16,906 bases of DNA from positions 1,455,012 through 1,471,917 of the forward strand of contig JAWQFM010000008.1 in assembly GCA_033442325.1 (NCBI GenBank). Direction: 5' to 3'. Both the position numbers and the translations under genes were made by a program. Shown piece after piece: positions 4,692 to 16,906 of the stretch (its first letter is position 1; every line of letters starts with the position of its first letter). This DNA is from Salpingoeca rosetta (lineage: Eukaryota > Protista > Choanoflagellata). The notes beneath the pieces were generated by a model. That model saw only the letters and a list, made by a program, of their open reading frames with translations, was not told the DNA's origin and did no database searches.

Positions 4692-4770
<79 letters not shown>

Positions 4771-5533
4771 GCACTTTCTGGGGGAAAAAGAGGCAAATCG
4801 GGGCCCACCATTGGCGATATAGAGATATCGCCGAGAGACCCCCGAGTCACATAATATTGAGAACAACACGTGTGTGTGTATATCAGTGTATGTCTGTGTC
4901 GTGACACCCCCGCTCTAGGGGTGTCACCCTTGTGACCCCGTTTCTATATCTTTTTACACACATANNNNNNNNNNNNNNNNNNNNNNNNNNNNNNNNNNNN
5001 NNNNNNNNNNNNNNNNNNNNNNNNNNNNNNNNNNNNNNNNNNNNNNNNNNNNNNNNNNNNNNNNNNNNNNNNNNNNNNNNNNNNNNNNNNNNNNNNNNNN
5101 NNNNNNNNNNNNNNNNNNNNNNNNNNNNNNNNNNNNNNNNNNNNNNNNNNNNNNNNNNNNNNNNNNNNNNNNNNNNNNNNNNNNNNNNNNNNNNNNNNNN
5201 NNNNNNNNNNNNNNNNNNNNNNNNNNNNNNNNNNNNNNNNNNNNNNNNNNNNNNNNNNNNNNNNNNNNNNNNNNNNNNNNNNNNNNNNNNNNNNNNNNNN
5301 NNNNNNNNNNNNNNNNNNNNNNNNNNNNNNNNNNNNNNNNNNNNNNNNNNNNNNNNNNNNNNNNNNNNNNNNNNNNNNNNNNNNNNNNNNNNNNNNNNNN
5401 NNNNNNNNNNNNNNNNNNNNNNNNNNNNNNNNNNNNNNNNNNNNNNNNNNNNNNNNNNNNNNNNNNNNNNNNNNNNNNNNNNNNNNNNNNNNNNNNNNNN
5501 NNNNNNNNNNNNNNNNNNNNGTCGTCGTCGTCG

Positions 5534-7867: not shown

Positions 7868-10024
7868 TCACGATCGGCCTTTGATGGGCCAAGCAGTTGG
7901 CTTAAGGCGGCGCTTGGTGAGTGAAAACCACTCACGAACGGTCTCCATATGCTCCGTGCCAACTTCAGCCTTTGCGGCACGCTCTGCACGCGTGCGCTTT
8001 GACCGCAAGCGCTTGCGTGTGCGCTCAACAATCGCCGCCAGCTCATCCAACGACAGGAAGTAGTTGACCTCCTTGAGTAGGTTGGTGGGGTCGTCATCGT
8101 CGTCATTGGCAGCGTCCTTGCTGCGCCCAAATGCACGCCGGCATGTCTTGCGCATGAGGGCGGCCGTCACCTCGCCTGTGCCGGCCCTCCTAGCGGCGGT
8201 GCGGACACGGGCGACAATGGTGTTGCGGCACTTGACGCAGAACACCTTAGAAGGGGACGAGGTGAAGAAGGCGTTGCCCACGTCGCCACCGCACACAAAG
8301 CACGCCGCGTTGCTCGGCTCGCACGCCACAGCGACCAGCGTCTTGTCTGCGCAGACGGCCCTGTGCTCCTCCAGGTCCTGCGTCACCACGCGCAGCATGG
8401 CCGCGCACAGGGCAGCGTCACGCGGCAGGCGCTTCTGCTCCCGCAACAAGACACAGCGCGCAAGGTGGCGGCGCGGAACGATGTGGTACGTCGCACCAAA
8501 CATCGACACATACTGCAGCGCGCAGGCCGGCGCAAGGTTCCACGACACATGCACGCATGCACTCAGCGCCTGACGCCAACAACCAAGATTTTGAAGAGGG
8601 GGGGGGTAAAGAAAGAGGGGTGGAGCATGAAGACAAACAAACAACATGCGTGTGCCAAAATATAGGTGAGTGGTTGAATCGCTGCGAGCAAGTATCAAAC
8701 ACAGTGCACTCGCAGAGAGTCACACACACATGCACACACACAAACATGCACATACACACATGCACATACACATACACACGCACAAACAGTGTGTGTGTGT
8801 GTGTCACACAGATACACACACTATCTATCCATCTATCGTGTCACACAGATACACACACTATCTATCCATCTATCATCTCAATGCGTGCATGCATGCACAC
8901 ACAACCAAGGCAGGAGAGAAACTCACCCGAACCCAGTGAAGGGTGCCTGGGTTGACGAGAACAGCCTCGCCCGGCCCTTGGATGAACCGCACCAGCGGAA
9001 TGTTCTCCTTATCGAGCTCGCCAGGTGTTGGCCACCATGCTTCCTTGAAGTCGATGCCCTTCTTCTTGCAGAGCGACTTGACGCGGCCCACGTGCTGCGG
9101 AGCAACGCCGTACCACACGCACGACCCCGGCCCGACGTTGATGTTGATTGCCATCAGGTTGTTGTTCTCCTGGCGTGCCGTCATTGAAGTGCCCGGGAGA
9201 TGAATGAACATCTGCGGGCTGTTGATGCCCTCGATGGGGTCGAGCTCTGCCAGCATGGTGCTGCCGCCGCGCCAGTGCAGCTCGTCGGGGAGGGCGTCGC
9301 TCAGCTCCTGCAACTGCTCAGTGAACACGGCCTGACACAGGTCGATGTTCGTGGCGAACAACACGCCCTTTCCGCGCGGAGAAACACGCGCACACAAGTC
9401 GTCGACAAAAGCAGACGTCGCCGATGTCGCAGCTGGCAACGGAAGGGGTGACAGCGGCACGCTTGTCACAAAAGGCAGCGCCCTCTCCTTGGGTGGAGGC
9501 GAGGCCAAGAAGACGCACTTCCACGACGCGGGCGGTGCCAGGATCTTGACGGACAGCATAGCCAACAAAGATGGGGGTGGTGGTGGCGGCGACGAAGGTG
9601 TCATGAAGATCTCGTGCTTGCCCCAGCGAAAAGTCCAGCCAGTGCAATACGCCTTCTTGAACTCAGGAATCTTGGCCCGTTTTCGCGGCAGCTCATCCTC
9701 CATGCTAAAGTCTTCGCCAGCAGCTTTAACAGCTGCCCAGGAGTTCACAGCTTTGGAGACACATGCGGAGAGGGACACGACCGCCGTGAACTCGGAAACC
9801 CTCCACTTGTTGATGCGCTTCTGTACGTGTGCCATGCGGTCGTGGTAGGAGATGGACTGCAGCTTGTCGAAGGAAAACGCCGGCAGCGGGTACTTGGTGG
9901 TGAAGCCCGGGTAGCGGAGAAGCGGTGGGCTATCGACCGTTGGCGTGGGCAAAACACCGGGCCCAACGCCGTTGGTCGTCAGGCACGCGTCCTTCCACAC
10001 CACTGACGATGCAGTCCGAGGCAT
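7868..10024 (-). CDS. KDM6 (UTX/JMJD3)-like JmjC protein with C-terminal C4 zinc-binding domain, ~599 aa; catalytic His substituted
   Basis: Exons 10024-8927 (accATG; donor gtgagt at 8926) and 8569-7868 (acceptor cag; TGA). Motifs collinear with KDM6: FATNIDL, GINSPQMFIHLPG, QENNN, ININVGPGSCVWY, WWP, RFIQGPGEAVLVNPGTLHWVRALSACVHVSWNL, then CFVC...CVKC. The start may be preceded by upstream exons. An alternative 3' end is possible via donor gtgagt at 7935 and mini-exon 7675-7665. Confidence 0.85.
8801..8874. repeat. Perfect 37-bp tandem duplication in the intron of the KDM6-like gene
   Basis: gtgtcacacagatacacacactatctatccatctatc at 8801-8837 and 8838-8874. Confidence 0.93.
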
Positions 10025-11447
10025 GGTGCAGGATAGCGCGCAGGGGATGGAGAGAAGGGAGAGAGAAGACTGGTGGTGGAGGAGGAGAGCGGGTGGGTGG
10101 CGGAGACGGAAGCTGAGGGGGGATGGGAGGGGGGATGGAAGGAGACGGAAGCTTAGGGGGCTGGGGAGATGGGTGGAGGAGAAGAAGGGCGGAGGAGAAG
10201 AAGGGTGAGTGATGGACACCACCAGACACGGAGAAGAAGAGGCGTGCGTGGGACGTACACAGGCACCACAGGTGCACAGAGAGAGAGGATAGCACGGGTG
10301 CACTCAAGCAACCGACCCGATATCAGTGGCCCAGATGAAAATGAACAGGAAGGATGGCGCTGGGCCATGCATACATGCACGTATGAAAAAAAGGAGGAAG
10401 GGAGGAAGAGAAGAAGAATTGAACAATGAAGTGCACAACAAGCAAGGCAAATGCTCTGTGTGTGTGTGTGTGTTTGTGCGCAGCTCAAAGTTTGCGCGGG
10501 AAGTGAAATTCGTTGCCAATGCAAGAAAAGTGGGAAAGGTGCCGAGGACGCACGCAACGCACACAGCGCACAGCGCCGCCGATGCACAGCAGGCGTGGTG
10601 GATATGCCCCCGTGGCCACAGGCGGAAAACTGCCAACACTGGCGCGAAAGGCAGCGATCCCCCAAGCAAGGGGCGCAGCGCACAGGCCGCAGTGCGACAA
10701 AGGTGTCCGTGTTCGTGTGTGCGTGCGTGTGGGCGTGTGGGCGGGGGCGTGTGACAGCACGCAAGAGCGTGCTGGGTGGAAGGTGAGAGGAAGACAGTAC
10801 GAGGGTGAGTGCTTGAAAGGACCGTGATAATGAAGGGGGAAGGAGGAAGAAGAGGAGGCTGTTGAGAACAGACGAGGCAGGGGGAAGAGTCGTGGTAGCT
10901 GCCACAGAGAGGCGCTAAGGAAGAAACTGGTTGCTGTCTCCTTCAATGCGCAGGAGCGCGCGCTCATGCACATGCGCACACGCAAGAGAGTGTGCTTGGA
11001 ATAGACCGCACAAGACAAGAGGAGAGAGAGAGATGGAGAGAGATGGAGAGAGATGGAGAGAGAAGCGCTGGCGCCCGCAGCAACAATGGCAACGCTGGCA
11101 ACAGCAGCAGTAGCAGCGCGCCAACAGTGGTGCAACAACTGCAACAACAACAAGCGCCAGGTGCGGAAGAGACAAAGACAGAGAGACACGGAGAGGGGAA
11201 GCGAAGAGCTGGTTGCCCGCGTGCCAACATCAAAGAAACAACACATTGGCCAAGAAATGGATAGTGCAGTCGGCGGCGCAGTCAACCCAACCAAAAGCAA
11301 GCCACGCAGGCAGGTACAGAGAGCTTGCTTTGCCGCGCGATAGAGGAAGAGAAGAAGAGAAAGTTGGTGGACGCGGGTTTGGCGCCAACGCTCCCTCAGC
11401 CAAGCACCATCAGTCCTTCATCACGAAATGTGACGAGCACATGGCAG

Positions 11448-12417: not shown

Positions 12418-12782
<365 letters not shown>

Positions 12783-12784
12783 CG

Positions 12785-15700
12785 ATGGGGGACAAGGACG
12801 GCAGCATCAACACGCACGGCGTGTGCGCAGCTGGGATCCGGGCGTTCCTGACAGATCTTCAAGATGCGTTTCCTGACTCCTACCAGGACTTGACGACTCA
12901 AGAGGCGTGTACCTCGCTCGTGGTTCCTCGTACAAAGGAGAGCGAGTGTGCATACCTTGAGGTGATGCGGGCAGCAGATGCAGCACTTGTTGCCCCAGCA
13001 ACTGTGTTTGTGTCCCATGCTTGGCGATACAAGATCGCTGATGTGTTGACAACCCTGCTCGAGTTTGCAAAGGAAGAGAAGGATCGCACGGGTGAAGAGC
13101 CCTTCTTCTGGTTTGATCTCTTTGTCAACAACCAACACACGAATGTCACTGCCAACTTACCGCAAGAATGGTGCGTTCACACACGTCTGTGTCTGCGTCT
13201 GTGTCTGTGTGTCTGCGTGCATGCTTGCGTCTGTGTGCGCGTCTGTACCTGTGTGTGTGTGTGTGTGTGTATCTGTGCGTGTCTGCGCCTGCGTCTTTGT
13301 GCTCGCTTGCATCTGTGCGTGTCAGCATGTGTGCCTCCCTGTACAAGTGTGTGTGTGTGTGTGTGGTTGTGGTCACGTCTGCACACCTGTCTTGTTGTTT
13401 TGTTGACAATCTCCGTCTCTCTCTCTCTCTCTCTCACACACACTCTCTCTCTTCTCTTCTCTTCTCTTCTCTTCTCTTCTCTCTCGCTTCTCTGTGTTCG
13501 TCATTGATTGGCTACAGGTGGAGCACCACGTTCAAGGACTCCATTGCTGCTATCGGCAAAGTGCTGCTTGTGCTGACCCCCTGGAACAATCCTGTGCCGC
13601 TCACCCGTGCGTGGTGTTTGTGGGAAGTATTCTGCAGCATCAGCCAAGACAACGTCGGGCTGGCAATTCGCCTGCCAGCGCAGCAACACTCTGCATTCAT
13701 GCAGGCGATTGTGGATAACTTTGAGGTTGTCACCGACATGCTCGTGGAGGTGCGCGCTGAGAAGGCGGATGCCTGGGATCCGGCCGACAAGGACATGATT
13801 TTTCATGCCATCCAGTCTTCCGTTGGCTTTGCAGCCCTGAACAAGGCCGTCAAAGACCAGATGCGAGCGTGGTGTCTCAACAATGCCATCGGCTTTGTCA
13901 CGAGTATGGAGAAGGACTACGAGCAGCAGCAACAACAGCAGCAGCAGCACACGCCGAGAAAAGCAACAGCACCTGCAGCGAAGCCGAACGTCAGTGTGCA
14001 GAAGGAGACAGAGTCGGTCGTGCAGTGCGAAGATGGGCCTCCACAAGCACCTGCACAGAACGTAGCAGATGCGCCAGCGACCGACGATGACATCGACGAC
14101 GAAGACATGCTCGCGCACAACTTCTCTCGGCTGTGCATGCAAGTCGGCGCTATTCTCCTCATGTTTGGTGATCACGACCGCGCCATTGAGATGCTGGAGA
14201 AGGCACTGGCCATTTTCAAACGACTTTGGGGTGGTGAACATGCGCAGATCGCAACCGCGTACACGACGCTTGGCGCGGCATACAGCGCGAAAAGTGACTA
14301 CTCCCGCGCCATGGAGGCCCTGCAGGCCGGCCTGGGCATGCAGCTGCGCATTAACGGCGAGGAGCACGAGAGCACTGCATCCACCTACAACACGCTCGGC
14401 TCCACTTGCATCAGCATGGGCGACTATGACCGAGGGATTGAGTACCAGGAGAAGGCGCTCAAGGTCCGGACCACTGTGCTTGGCCCCGACAACGTGAAGA
14501 CGGCCACAGCACACAACAACCTCGCCAGAGGTCTGTTTGAGAAGGGCGACTACAAACGCACCATTGAGCACTTTGAGGAGGCGGTCCGCATCAGCTGTGC
14601 TGCAAGCAAGGACGGTGACAAGCACCCAAACACGGGCGCCACCTACAACAACCTCGGCCGCACCTATGACGCACTCGGGGACTACGACAAGGCGCTGGCA
14701 TCGTATCAGCGCGCTGTGGAGGTGTTCTGCGACACGCTTGGCGAGGATCACAGCACAACGGGCCTGGCATACGGCAACATTGGCACCGTCCACGACAGCA
14801 AGGGTGACTACGACAGGGCGGTGGAATACTTTGAGAAGGCGATCGCAATCGTTGTGGCTGCGCTTGGTGACGAGCACCCGAGTGTGGCCAACCTCTACAA
14901 CAGCATGGCGTCAGCTTTCATGGGACAGGGCCGCTACGACCAGGCGCTTCAGATGTACGAGAAGGACCTGCAGATCACGCAGGCCTCGCTCGGCGAGTGG
15001 CACATGGGCACTGCGGCAAGCTACGGCGGACTGGGGTCGGCGTACCGCGCGCTTGGCGAATACGACCGCGCTATTGAGATGTATGAGAAGGACTTGGCCA
15101 TCGGTGTTCGCGTGATGGGCGAGAAGCACCCAGATGTGGCAACGACGTACTCCAACCTCGGCGCCGCATACAGCAACAAAGGAGAGCACGACCGCGCCAT
15201 CGAGCACTTCATCAAGTGCTTGGAGATTACCATTGCCGCCTTTGGGAACGAGCACCCTGACGTGGCCACATGCCTCAACAACCTCGGCAGTGCTTACACC
15301 TCCATCGGCGCCGCAGATGATGCAGTGGAGTTCCTGCACAGGGCTGTGGAGATTCGGTCGGCAGTGCTGGGCAACATGCATCCTGAGACAGCTGTTGCTG
15401 TGTCGAACCTTGGCCGCGCCTTGCGTGCGACTGGCGATGACGACCAGGCCCTTGAATGCTTTGAGCTCGCGCTTGAGATCAATCGCCGTGTGCTTGGGGA
15501 CGACCACCCCAGCACTGCGCGGGCACTGAACAGCATCGGCCATGTGTCCAAAGGCAAGGGCGACTTTGCAACAGCGGTGGAGGCTTACAAATGCGCAGCA
15601 AGAATTATGGAAGCAAGCTTTGGTGCTGACCATCCACACACATGCGTGGTCAAAGCCAACCTTCAAGAGGCTCAAGCTGCGCTTGATGAAGCTACCAGCG

Positions 15701-16267
15701 CGTCACAATCTCAGACTCCTGTGAGTTCGTTTGTTGTTTTGTGTGATGTGTGCGTGATGTGTGTGTGTGTGTGCGAGGTGGGTGTGTGTGTGTCTGTGTG
15801 TACGCGTGATGTGTGTATGTGTGTGTGCTTGCTTGCGCTGCTGGCTGTGTTTGTTTTATTCCACACTCATCTTGCCTGACTGACTGATGCATTTTGTGCA
15901 GGCCGTGCGTCCTGGGCGCCTGTCAGGCTGGCTGAGGAAGCGCGGGTTGTGGAACACAGCATTTCAAACACGCTGGTTTGTGCTCACGGATGATGCTCTC
16001 ATCTACTACAGGACCCAGCACGACCGAGTGCACAAGGGAAAGATCAACCTCAACCTCATCACAAAGTCCGAGTTGAAACAGAAACAGCACCAACGGCCCC
16101 GCTCCAGCTCCAGCTCAACCGATGCGGATGTTGTTGTCAATGAACTTCACATCACCGTTCCCGGCCGAACCTTTGTCATTCGCGTTGACGAGCGCTCCGA
16201 TCAGACACTCGCCGAGTGGGCTGAGGCTATCCATCAAGCCCAGGCACAGAGGCGTATTGGAAAGTGA
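12785..16267 (+). CDS. TIR/HET-like domain - 12x TPR (42-aa, kinesin-light-chain type) - PH domain protein, ~984 aa
   Basis: Exons 12785-13170, 13518-15720, 15902-16267; GT-AG, phases 2 and 0 consistent (joins QEW|WSTTF and SQTP|AVRPG). N-terminal motifs FVSHAW, WFDLFVNNQH, LTRAWCLWE; TPR array; PH motifs GWLRKRG...RWFVL...LIYY...KGKINL...EWAEAI. Confidence 0.9.
14122..15639 (+). repeat. Array of 12 diverged 42-aa TPR repeats (126-nt period; repeat 4 has 2 extra aa)
   Basis: Consensus tAxxYnnLGxaYxxxGdYDrAieyyEKAlxIxxxxLGeeHPx; 506 codons = 12x42+2, followed by a capping helix. Confidence 0.93.
15902..16267 (+). other. PH domain encoded by a single terminal exon
   Basis: beta1 GWLRKRG, beta2 RWFVL, beta3 LIYY and a C-terminal helix with the invariant Trp (EWAEAI); acceptor ttttgtgcag preceded by ctgac branch-like motifs. 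Confidence 0.9.
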
Positions 16268-16906
16268 CCGATTGGCCTCATCCATTGTTGTCTCGTGTTG
16301 ATTTGTGTTGTGTGTCAACCTTGATCGAGTGGATTTCGCCCAGATCGTCCGCTGTTGCTCTCGTTATTCCCTTCCTGTTGACGCTCCACGACAATGGTCG
16401 CGTAAGCACTGTTACCTGCTGTGGTGTACTTTCAAGCCGCCGCCAGTGCTTTGTCTGGTCTTTCCATCTCGTTGGTTGTTTGCTGCTCTCGTTAGTGTGC
16501 CAAGACGCCCTGCCCTGCTCGGTTCACGTCCCAGGCCCTCCTGTTACAGTTAGTTGAGACACGACAAGTGTGTGTGTGTGTGTTTACTGTAGGCAAACGC
16601 AACAAACAAGAACACAAGGAGAATGAACAAGCACAACAAGCTGCTGCCAAATCAACTCGGGCAGCACGCTCAAACAAACACAAGACAAGTGCACACACAG
16701 TCAATGACGCTGCCAAGGCGACATGGGCAGAGTGTGCACGAACACAAACAATCTAAACAATGAACAGCATGCATACATGCGCGCAGAGCAGTGCTAGGCA
16801 TGGCATGAATGCTTGCAGGCAAGCATACACAACAGACACACTTCACAACACTGCATGGCACGCAGGCATGGCATTTGCCAAGCATAACGGGCATGCACAC
16901 ACACAC

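Follow-up and report, generated by a model that had tools for sequence, protein, structure and literature searches.

A divergent, probable TIR/HET-superfamily domain joined to a TPR array and a PH domain in an expanded gene family of the choanoflagellate Salpingoeca rosetta

We analyzed a 16,906-nucleotide stretch of DNA from the choanoflagellate Salpingoeca rosetta (contig JAWQFM010000008.1, positions 1,455,012 to 1,471,917, forward strand; hereafter "the window", whose numbering is used unless another sequence is named), focusing on a gene that occupies positions 12785-16267 of the + strand. Reading of the sequence and scripted splicing gave three exons and 984 codons, encoding a protein of 984 amino acids. 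An earlier note, made from the letters of the window alone, had proposed that this protein joins an N-terminal TIR/HET-like effector to 12 TPRs and a PH domain. In our best explanation of the data, the N-terminal domain is an extended member of the TIR/HET superfamily that acts as a TIR-type N-glycosidase within a TPR-gated, receptor-like protein; we put the probability of this reading as a whole at about one-half. Its parts differ in strength. Membership of the N-terminal domain in the TIR/HET superfamily is very likely, whether the domain would act as an enzyme is close to an even call, and an immune or cell-death role for the family is a tentative suggestion.

The case for the domain begins with three short motifs. 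On translation, the positions that the earlier note had given for them proved exact, as did its claim that an intron divides them: the motifs lie in two reading frames with the intron in between. The features of the domain are as follows.

12992-13896, + strand (intron 1 inside): TIR-like core, residues ~70-255, with strands A-E and helices A-E as seen in models of paralogues.
13007-13024, + strand: FVSHAW, residues 75-80, the strand A motif (Ser77, His78, Trp80), which matches the F-x-S of TIR strand A and is nearly invariant.
13109-13138, + strand: WFDLFVNNQH, residues 109-118, strand B and the start of the BB loop, with Trp109, Asp111 and Gln117 nearly invariant.
13600-13626, + strand: LTRAWCLWE, in which the codon for Glu165 is 13624-13626.
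13606-13626, + strand: RAWCLWE, residues 159-165, the W-x-x-x-E motif at the start of helix C.

The motif blocks are collinear in the family, with spacings of 30 and 48 residues. In an alignment of 88 family sequences, Trp80, Pro154, Arg159, Ala160, Trp161, Cys162, Leu163, Glu165 and Ile223 were invariant, and Ser77, His78, Trp109, Asp111 and Gln117 were nearly so; Glu165 was also invariant in a wider alignment to which a bacterial branch had been added. Of the 161 relatives that we examined, 160 kept the string R-x-W-C-L-x-E, as did every one of the 40 annotated S. rosetta paralogues, so the glutamate on whose conservation across paralogues the earlier note had staked its proposal is retained. 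Residues 1-275 of the spliced product align end to end, across the exon junction, with ~40 paralogues at 54-65% identity. Judged from sequence, this alignment across the junction is far beyond chance, indicating that the domain is real.

We next asked what fold the domain is predicted to adopt. The AlphaFold model was made for a paralogue that is 65% identical (P0002), with the family alignment, and stands in for the window protein. The whole domain was modelled with a mean predicted local distance difference test score (pLDDT) of 92.9 and a predicted template modelling score of 0.90, and residues 66-262 alone with a pLDDT of 92.0. The model shows a flavodoxin-like alpha/beta fold with strands and helices in the order A to E, forming a TIR core that is elaborated by a three-helix N-terminal extension of ~68 residues, long BB and CC loops, and additional helices at the C-terminus. 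A Foldseek search of the PDB with the whole domain returned TIR domains almost exclusively, the best being an RPP1-type TIR (probability 0.95, E 5.9e-3); with the core, AbTir was matched at a probability of 0.99 (E 8.7e-3, TM-score 0.38/0.53). TIR chains matched the paralogue models over model residues 69-254. In an exhaustive structural comparison with 48,161 chains, the top of the list was homogeneous, consisting of TIR, ThsB and NDT chains whose matches spanned 85-90% of the target domains and lay ~2.5 Z units above other Rossmann-like folds. These results support a TIR-superfamily fold for the N-terminal domain, as seen in the model of a close paralogue. The fold check that the earlier note had called for thus came out in part as it expected: AlphaFold and Foldseek gave TIR matches, with weak scores and on a paralogue model, and membership of the Pfam TIR or HET families was not found. 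A homodimer prediction for the N-terminal domain scored 0.01, a value that counts neither way.

Profile comparisons pointed to the same superfamily. None of 88 members exceeded the gathering score of Pfam TIR (PF13676 TIR_2 or PF01582 TIR), and Pfam searches with the two exon-encoded halves and with ten full paralogue domains gave nothing related to TIR or HET at E-values up to 10. In scans of the individual members, TIR_2 was the commonest weak family, matching 11 of the 88 eukaryotic members below threshold (best E 0.005). In the wider alignment, sub-threshold matches to TIR_2 and to HET each occurred in 8 of 74 members, and every other family in two at most. As a reference we aligned 16 canonical TIR_2 domains encoded by S. 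rosetta itself; against the PDB this alignment found Cat1, Roq1, PdTIR, AbTir and SARM1 at E-values of 6e-14 to 2e-10, and its near-invariant glutamate fell on the WCLEEL of Roq1. When the family was compared with the 16-TIR alignment using hhalign, the probability was 12%, rising to 33% (E 4.6e-4, 94 columns) after addition of the divergent bacterial branch; against subgroups of the S. rosetta TIRs it ranged from 0.2 to 27%. The hhalign register placed strand A on strand A, the strand B Asp on the corresponding Asp, and WCLWE on the C-x-x-E of TIR, and a hidden Markov model alignment of the family with TIR gave the same register. A sequence search of the PDB with the wider family profile had a single match, PdTIR (3H16, E 0.38), which reads FISHAW; with the narrower profile there was one irrelevant match only. 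Identity to solved TIRs is 11-16%. These weak profile alignments would put Glu165 where the catalytic glutamate of TIRs lies. The sequence evidence is independent of the fold and likewise weak, and all of the similarity scores are middling. A feature search of the ESM Atlas yielded one low-scoring lead (HNOB, 0.76), which we did not use.

The earlier note had also drawn a parallel with the fungal HET domain (PF06985). Our comparison with HET rests on weak Pfam matches and on the literature. The HET matches in the wider alignment fell on the WIDxxCxNQ block, the best at 16 bits (E 0.016), and no family member reached the HET gathering score of 22.5 bits. The one HET-matching member that was checked individually is a bacterial, ankyrin-fused relative, in which the block WIDFICYNQH gives the match; HET was not among the weak Pfam matches listed for the 88 eukaryotic members. 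A six-frame Pfam search for HET in the S. rosetta genome gave no match, but control genomes were equally silent and the search is uninformative. We take the HET consensus to contain three collinear blocks parallel to FVSHAW, WxDxxxxNQ and RxWxxxE. What stands of the parallel drawn in the earlier note is a resemblance at the level of the superfamily, seen in the fold, in the weak TIR_2 and HET matches and in the glutamate; membership of the named Pfam HET or TIR families does not. The window domain resembles HET in being large (~260 amino acids, versus ~220-240 for HET; PMC12881547), in standing N-terminal to repeat arrays, in its lineage-specific expansion and in its remote relation to TIR. 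Unlike HET domains in the HET-NACHT-WD/TPR/ANK class of NOD-like receptors (NLRs), it is joined to its TPRs directly, with no NACHT or NB-ARC, and its family has an additional N-terminal extension of ~68 residues. HET, the cell-death effector of heterokaryon-incompatibility proteins, has a remote relationship to TIR (PMC4986451, PMC10197012) and suffices to bring about cell death in fungi (PMC10197012); its activity and structure are still to be established (PMC12881547). Using PSI-BLAST, Dyrka et al., 2014 found homologues of HET-e1 in stramenopiles, haptophytes, choanoflagellates, green algae and bryophytes, included an S. rosetta protein in an alignment of HET and TIR, and tied HET to PdTIR by HHpred (PMC4986451). 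Because the taxonomic range is the same, the family of the window gene is probably what those authors touched on, in one sentence.

In several canonical TIR_2 domains of S. rosetta (L001, L002, L008, L010 and L013 in our locus list), strand A is followed by S-Y-x-W and strand B contains W-x-D, examples being FLSYTWKY...WMDIQQ and SYSWG...CWIDIRN. To judge by these strings, such domains seem to stand midway between TIR, HET and the family of the window gene.

The remainder of the protein consists of the following parts.

13918-14118, + strand: low-complexity linker, residues ~263-329 (67 residues), poly-Q and acidic, dissimilar to the linkers of paralogues.
14119-15666, + strand: TPR array, residues ~330-845, 12 TPRs of the kinesin-light-chain/NPHP3 type (Pfam TPR_12, TPR_10 and TPR_NPHP3).
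15920-16243, + strand: PH domain (PF00169), Pfam score 51.2 bits versus a cut-off of 25.1, E 2.1e-13.

The TPR region matched TPR_12 at E 8.9e-121 and TPR_10 at E 2.1e-106, the latter over 12 stretches. No Walker A or GK[ST] motif occurs anywhere in the 984 residues, and Pfam found no NACHT, NB-ARC or any other nucleoside triphosphatase (NTPase) in the protein. Pfam and the motif scan thus bear out the description of 12 TPRs and a PH domain without a Walker A motif, as well as the claim of a direct fusion of effector to TPRs, since there is no P-loop and only the low-complexity linker lies between the two parts. The central P-loop NTPase by which NLRs and other STAND (signal transduction ATPases that have numerous domains) proteins are defined is absent.

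The gene model that underlies these assignments is as follows.

12785-13170, + strand: exon 1, residues 1-128 and two bases of codon 129, with an ATG start and a GT donor; aligns to paralogues and encodes the N-terminal helical extension and the first TIR-like half, that is strand A (FVSHAW), helix A and strand B (WFDLFVNNQH).
13171-13517, + strand: intron 1, 347 nt, GT..AG, TG/CT-rich; splits the TIR-like domain.
13518-15720, + strand: exon 2, residues 129-863, encoding the second TIR-like half, the linker and the entire TPR array.
15721-15901, + strand: intron 2, 181 nt, GT..AG, TG-rich; precedes the PH exon.
15902-16267, + strand: exon 3, residues 864-984 and the stop codon, encoding the PH domain.

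Both introns, and expression of the gene, were confirmed by RNA. In a stranded RNA sequencing (RNA-seq) run, with the RNA on the + strand, 12 raw reads joined position 13170 to 13518, skipping intron 1, nine joined 15720 to 15902, skipping intron 2, and no reads covered either intron. A transcript contig of 3337 nt from a second study covers all three exons with zero mismatches. Two RNA-seq runs of similar depth from one study gave 53 and 699 reads on the gene (window positions 12750-16350), a difference of ~13-fold between samples whose conditions are coded. An identical protein was absent among the 120 matches listed from a word search, the best of which was 71% identical over the queried part; the gene may be missing from public annotation or modelled differently there. 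Microsatellite-like (CA)n and (TG)n/(CT)n tracts lie just 5' of the start codon (12640-12783) and throughout both introns (13171-13517 and 15721-15901), and yield long spurious open reading frames on both strands that are rich in Cys/Val or His/Thr. Elsewhere in the window, positions 4965-5520 are an assembly gap of 556 N, and the upstream neighbour on the - strand (8876-10303) is a long frame with a JmjC hydroxylase domain (Pfam E 3.8e-16) and is unrelated.

We then looked at how far the domain has spread. When the part of exon 2 outside the TPRs was used as the query, a word search retrieved 168 proteins, the nearest of which were all from S. rosetta and which included ~40 S. rosetta paralogues. 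These are named "mbre TPR repeat protein", "hypothetical", "PH domain-containing" or, in one case, "kinesin light chain", and their precomputed Pfam lists are nearly all of TPR type with some PH and no TIR or HET. The prediction that automated pipelines would label such proteins only by their TPRs therefore holds for paralogues annotated as TPR, PH or hypothetical. In a six-frame search, 129 exons of the S. rosetta genome matched the family profile, equivalent to ~66 second halves with matching first halves. The intron splits the domain at the same profile position (~122) in almost all S. rosetta paralogues, indicating that the family expanded by DNA duplication. By the same type of count, ~30 canonical TIR_2 and ~12 DUF4062 exon matches exceed their cut-offs, versus ~66 loci of the family; on these exon-match counts, which are lower bounds and not copy numbers, no other TIR-superfamily group in S. 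rosetta appears to be as large. Among the 40 annotated paralogues, the N-terminal domain is the best-conserved part (54-65% identity), the TPR region varies in length and is 29-46% identical, and the linker cannot be aligned. A homologous PH domain ends 18 of the 40, so that the census of paralogues and C-terminal variants suggested in the earlier note now stands at ~66 loci with a PH end in 18/40. One paralogue (G000:C23:1190664-1191817, +) lies ~2 kb from a sub-threshold TIR_2 match (G000:C23:1193998-1194303, -; 26.9 bits, cut-off 28). Pairs of family and TIR_2 loci within 30 kb of each other numbered ~7 genome-wide, versus ~4 expected by a rough count, which is not significant.

Relatives outside S. 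rosetta were found in Monosiga brevicollis, in the transcriptomes of other choanoflagellates, in oomycetes (among them Aphanomyces, fused to ankyrin repeats), in haptophytes, in the green alga Cymbomonas, in a chytrid, in the acoel Symsagittifera, on many marine metagenome contigs, and in a small bacterial branch fused to ankyrin repeats; no relatives were found among viral contigs. The same N-terminal domain is joined elsewhere to ankyrin repeats, DUF285 and other modules. The combination of domain and TPRs also occurs in an acoel animal (P0066, Symsagittifera roscoffensis LOC134851102, located on a contig of 60 Mb) and in a chytrid fungus (P0102, Chytridiales sp. JEL 0842, annotated "kinesin light chain 3"). 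Based on the sequences of these acoel and chytrid members, we conclude that the family extends beyond protists.

In 185,579 prokaryotic species genomes, a pattern scan identified a single relative, on contig JANMWT010000154.1 of an alphaproteobacterial metagenome-assembled genome (MAG; locus L027), and this was the sole match among 401 sampled Alphaproteobacteria. It reads FVSHAW, WIDFICYNQH and RAWCLWE at the three motifs and matches a paralogue by BLASTP at E 3e-9. Its frame of 400 amino acids (3656-4855 of L027) is preceded by a canonical TIR_2+TPR gene (324-2306), and its end is overlapped by an ankyrin-repeat frame (4701-5468). The bacterial-type subfamily comprises 41 proteins from metagenomes and MAGs, nearly all ankyrin-fused and usually single proteins of ~590 amino acids; the L027 copy may be frameshifted. 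HET sequences were found in none of 401 Pseudomonadota genomes (0/401).

Comparison with characterized systems places the protein near several of them. Catalytic TIRs (SARM1, AbTir, the plant TNL TIRs RPP1 and RUN1, and ThsB of Thoeris) are its best structural matches and share with it the strand A F-x-S, the strand B Asp, the W-C-x-x-E at the start of helix C and the attachment of repeat sensors. The window domain differs from these in its length, which is roughly double, in its long BB and CC loops and additional helices, and in falling below all Pfam thresholds. The TeTIR/NIR group (DUF4062; TEP1, NWD1/2, NPHP3 and bacterial Avs2) likewise has an extended TIR-like domain, formerly overlooked, with a catalytic glutamate, N-terminal in proteins that end in WD40 or NPHP3-type TPR repeats. 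A NACHT ATPase, however, invariably follows TeTIR, which also contains an RWG loop, and the window domain has neither. The Pfam model of this group (PF13271) matched 13 exons elsewhere in the S. rosetta genome (12 over the cut-off; for example L028-L033) and no family member, and DUF4062 was absent from the weak Pfam matches listed for the members. TeTIR and NIR are Glu-dependent NADases (10.64898/2026.09.21.753143, 10.64898/2026.09.04.749371), as was recently shown for the DUF4062 domains of human TEP1 and bacterial Avs2, and a canonical S. rosetta TIR makes cyclic ADP-ribose (10.64898/2026.04.20.719644). Bacterial TIR+TPR systems (BcTir/BcTpr, 10.1101/2023.05.26.542521; the TIR_2+TPR gene of L027) also couple a TIR-type effector to TPRs with no STAND NTPase. 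They differ in having a canonical TIR_2 and a prokaryotic, anti-phage setting; the window protein is eukaryotic, with a divergent domain and a PH domain.

The working model that we favor is as follows. The protein would be cytosolic and receptor-like, with its first ~260 residues forming the extended TIR/HET-superfamily domain. Catalytic TIRs use a glutamate in helix C, and Glu165 would cleave the N-glycosidic bond of nicotinamide adenine dinucleotide (NAD+) or a related nucleotide, with depletion of this substrate or production of a signal as the outcome. Binding of a ligand or partner by the TPR array would release or assemble the enzyme domain, and the PH domain may put it on a phosphoinositide membrane. 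The expanded family might then serve non-self recognition or regulated cell death, as fungal HET proteins and TIR receptors do; this role is suggested by the analogy with HET, the expansion of the family, its variable repeat modules and the TIR+TPR neighbour of the bacterial relative. A bolder version holds that ~66 genes encoding TIR/HET-like+TPR(+PH) proteins with no NTPase make up the chief intracellular repertoire of receptors for non-self or cell death in choanoflagellates and several other protist lineages, with a TPR ligand switching a Glu-dependent domain that consumes NAD+ or makes a signal, and with the family as the missing link between HET and TIR. We consider that version unlikely.

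Several observations weigh against the favored model. The structural models come from a paralogue and not from the window protein itself, and Glu165 was placed on the TIR glutamate by sequence alignment, at hhalign probabilities of only 12-33%. Many TIR domains that bear the glutamate are scaffolds or are inactive in isolation, TPRs of the kinesin-light-chain type together with a PH domain are also typical of trafficking proteins, and the homodimer prediction gave no verdict on self-association. The domain could belong to the TIR/HET superfamily as a non-enzymatic assembly or adaptor module, in signalling scaffolds or in membrane or cargo trafficking, as the kinesin-light-chain/NPHP3 type of the TPRs, the annotation of one paralogue as a kinesin light chain and the adaptor role proposed for HET by Dyrka et al., 2014 (PMC4986451) would suggest. 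By contrast, the near-invariance of the Ser, the Asp, the W-x-x-x-E and other polar residues from protists to bacteria fits an active site better than an interface, and interfaces usually drift between as many as 66 paralogues; we give an adaptor role a small though appreciable chance.

Alternatively, the domain might be a member of the wider TIR/NDT/DNPH/SLOG assemblage that is not an NADase, for example another nucleotide or nucleoside N-glycosidase or a transferase, and NDT-like chains do score as high as TIRs in the structural comparison. The recurrent weak sequence matches, however, are to TIR_2 and HET only, and not to NDT-type families, and the F-x-S-H-A-W and W-C-x-x-E strings are TIR-like, leaving this alternative rather improbable. 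The likeness to TIR could also be no more than a generic three-layer alpha/beta arrangement in an unrelated family, with coincidental motif parallels. This would agree with the failure of the N-terminal domain (~260 amino acids) to reach the gathering score of any Pfam family in any member scanned, which is a further point against the favored model. It agrees poorly with the homogeneous top of the structural list and its distance from other Rossmann-like folds, and with independent sequence searches that lead to the same superfamily in the same register, the three motif positions coinciding. We regard coincidence as very doubtful.

Domains of the TIR type that cleave NAD+ are a common immune currency of bacteria, plants and animals, and the extended TIR-like families TeTIR and NIR were recognized only in 2026. 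The protein described here represents a divergent branch of the TIR/HET superfamily, invisible to Pfam, in a TPR-PH architecture with no NTPase, rather than a new kind of system, and we place its family between TIR and fungal HET. S. rosetta is a model for the closest relatives of animals, and this receptor-like design does without a STAND NTPase. Even as a scaffold, the domain would define a large family that lacks annotation and merits a database entry. If the domain is active, it would offer a tractable entry both to the biochemistry of HET and to choanoflagellate immunity. The family bears on the question of what HET domains do, and if the missing-link version is true, these proteins could be used to establish what HET itself does biochemically.

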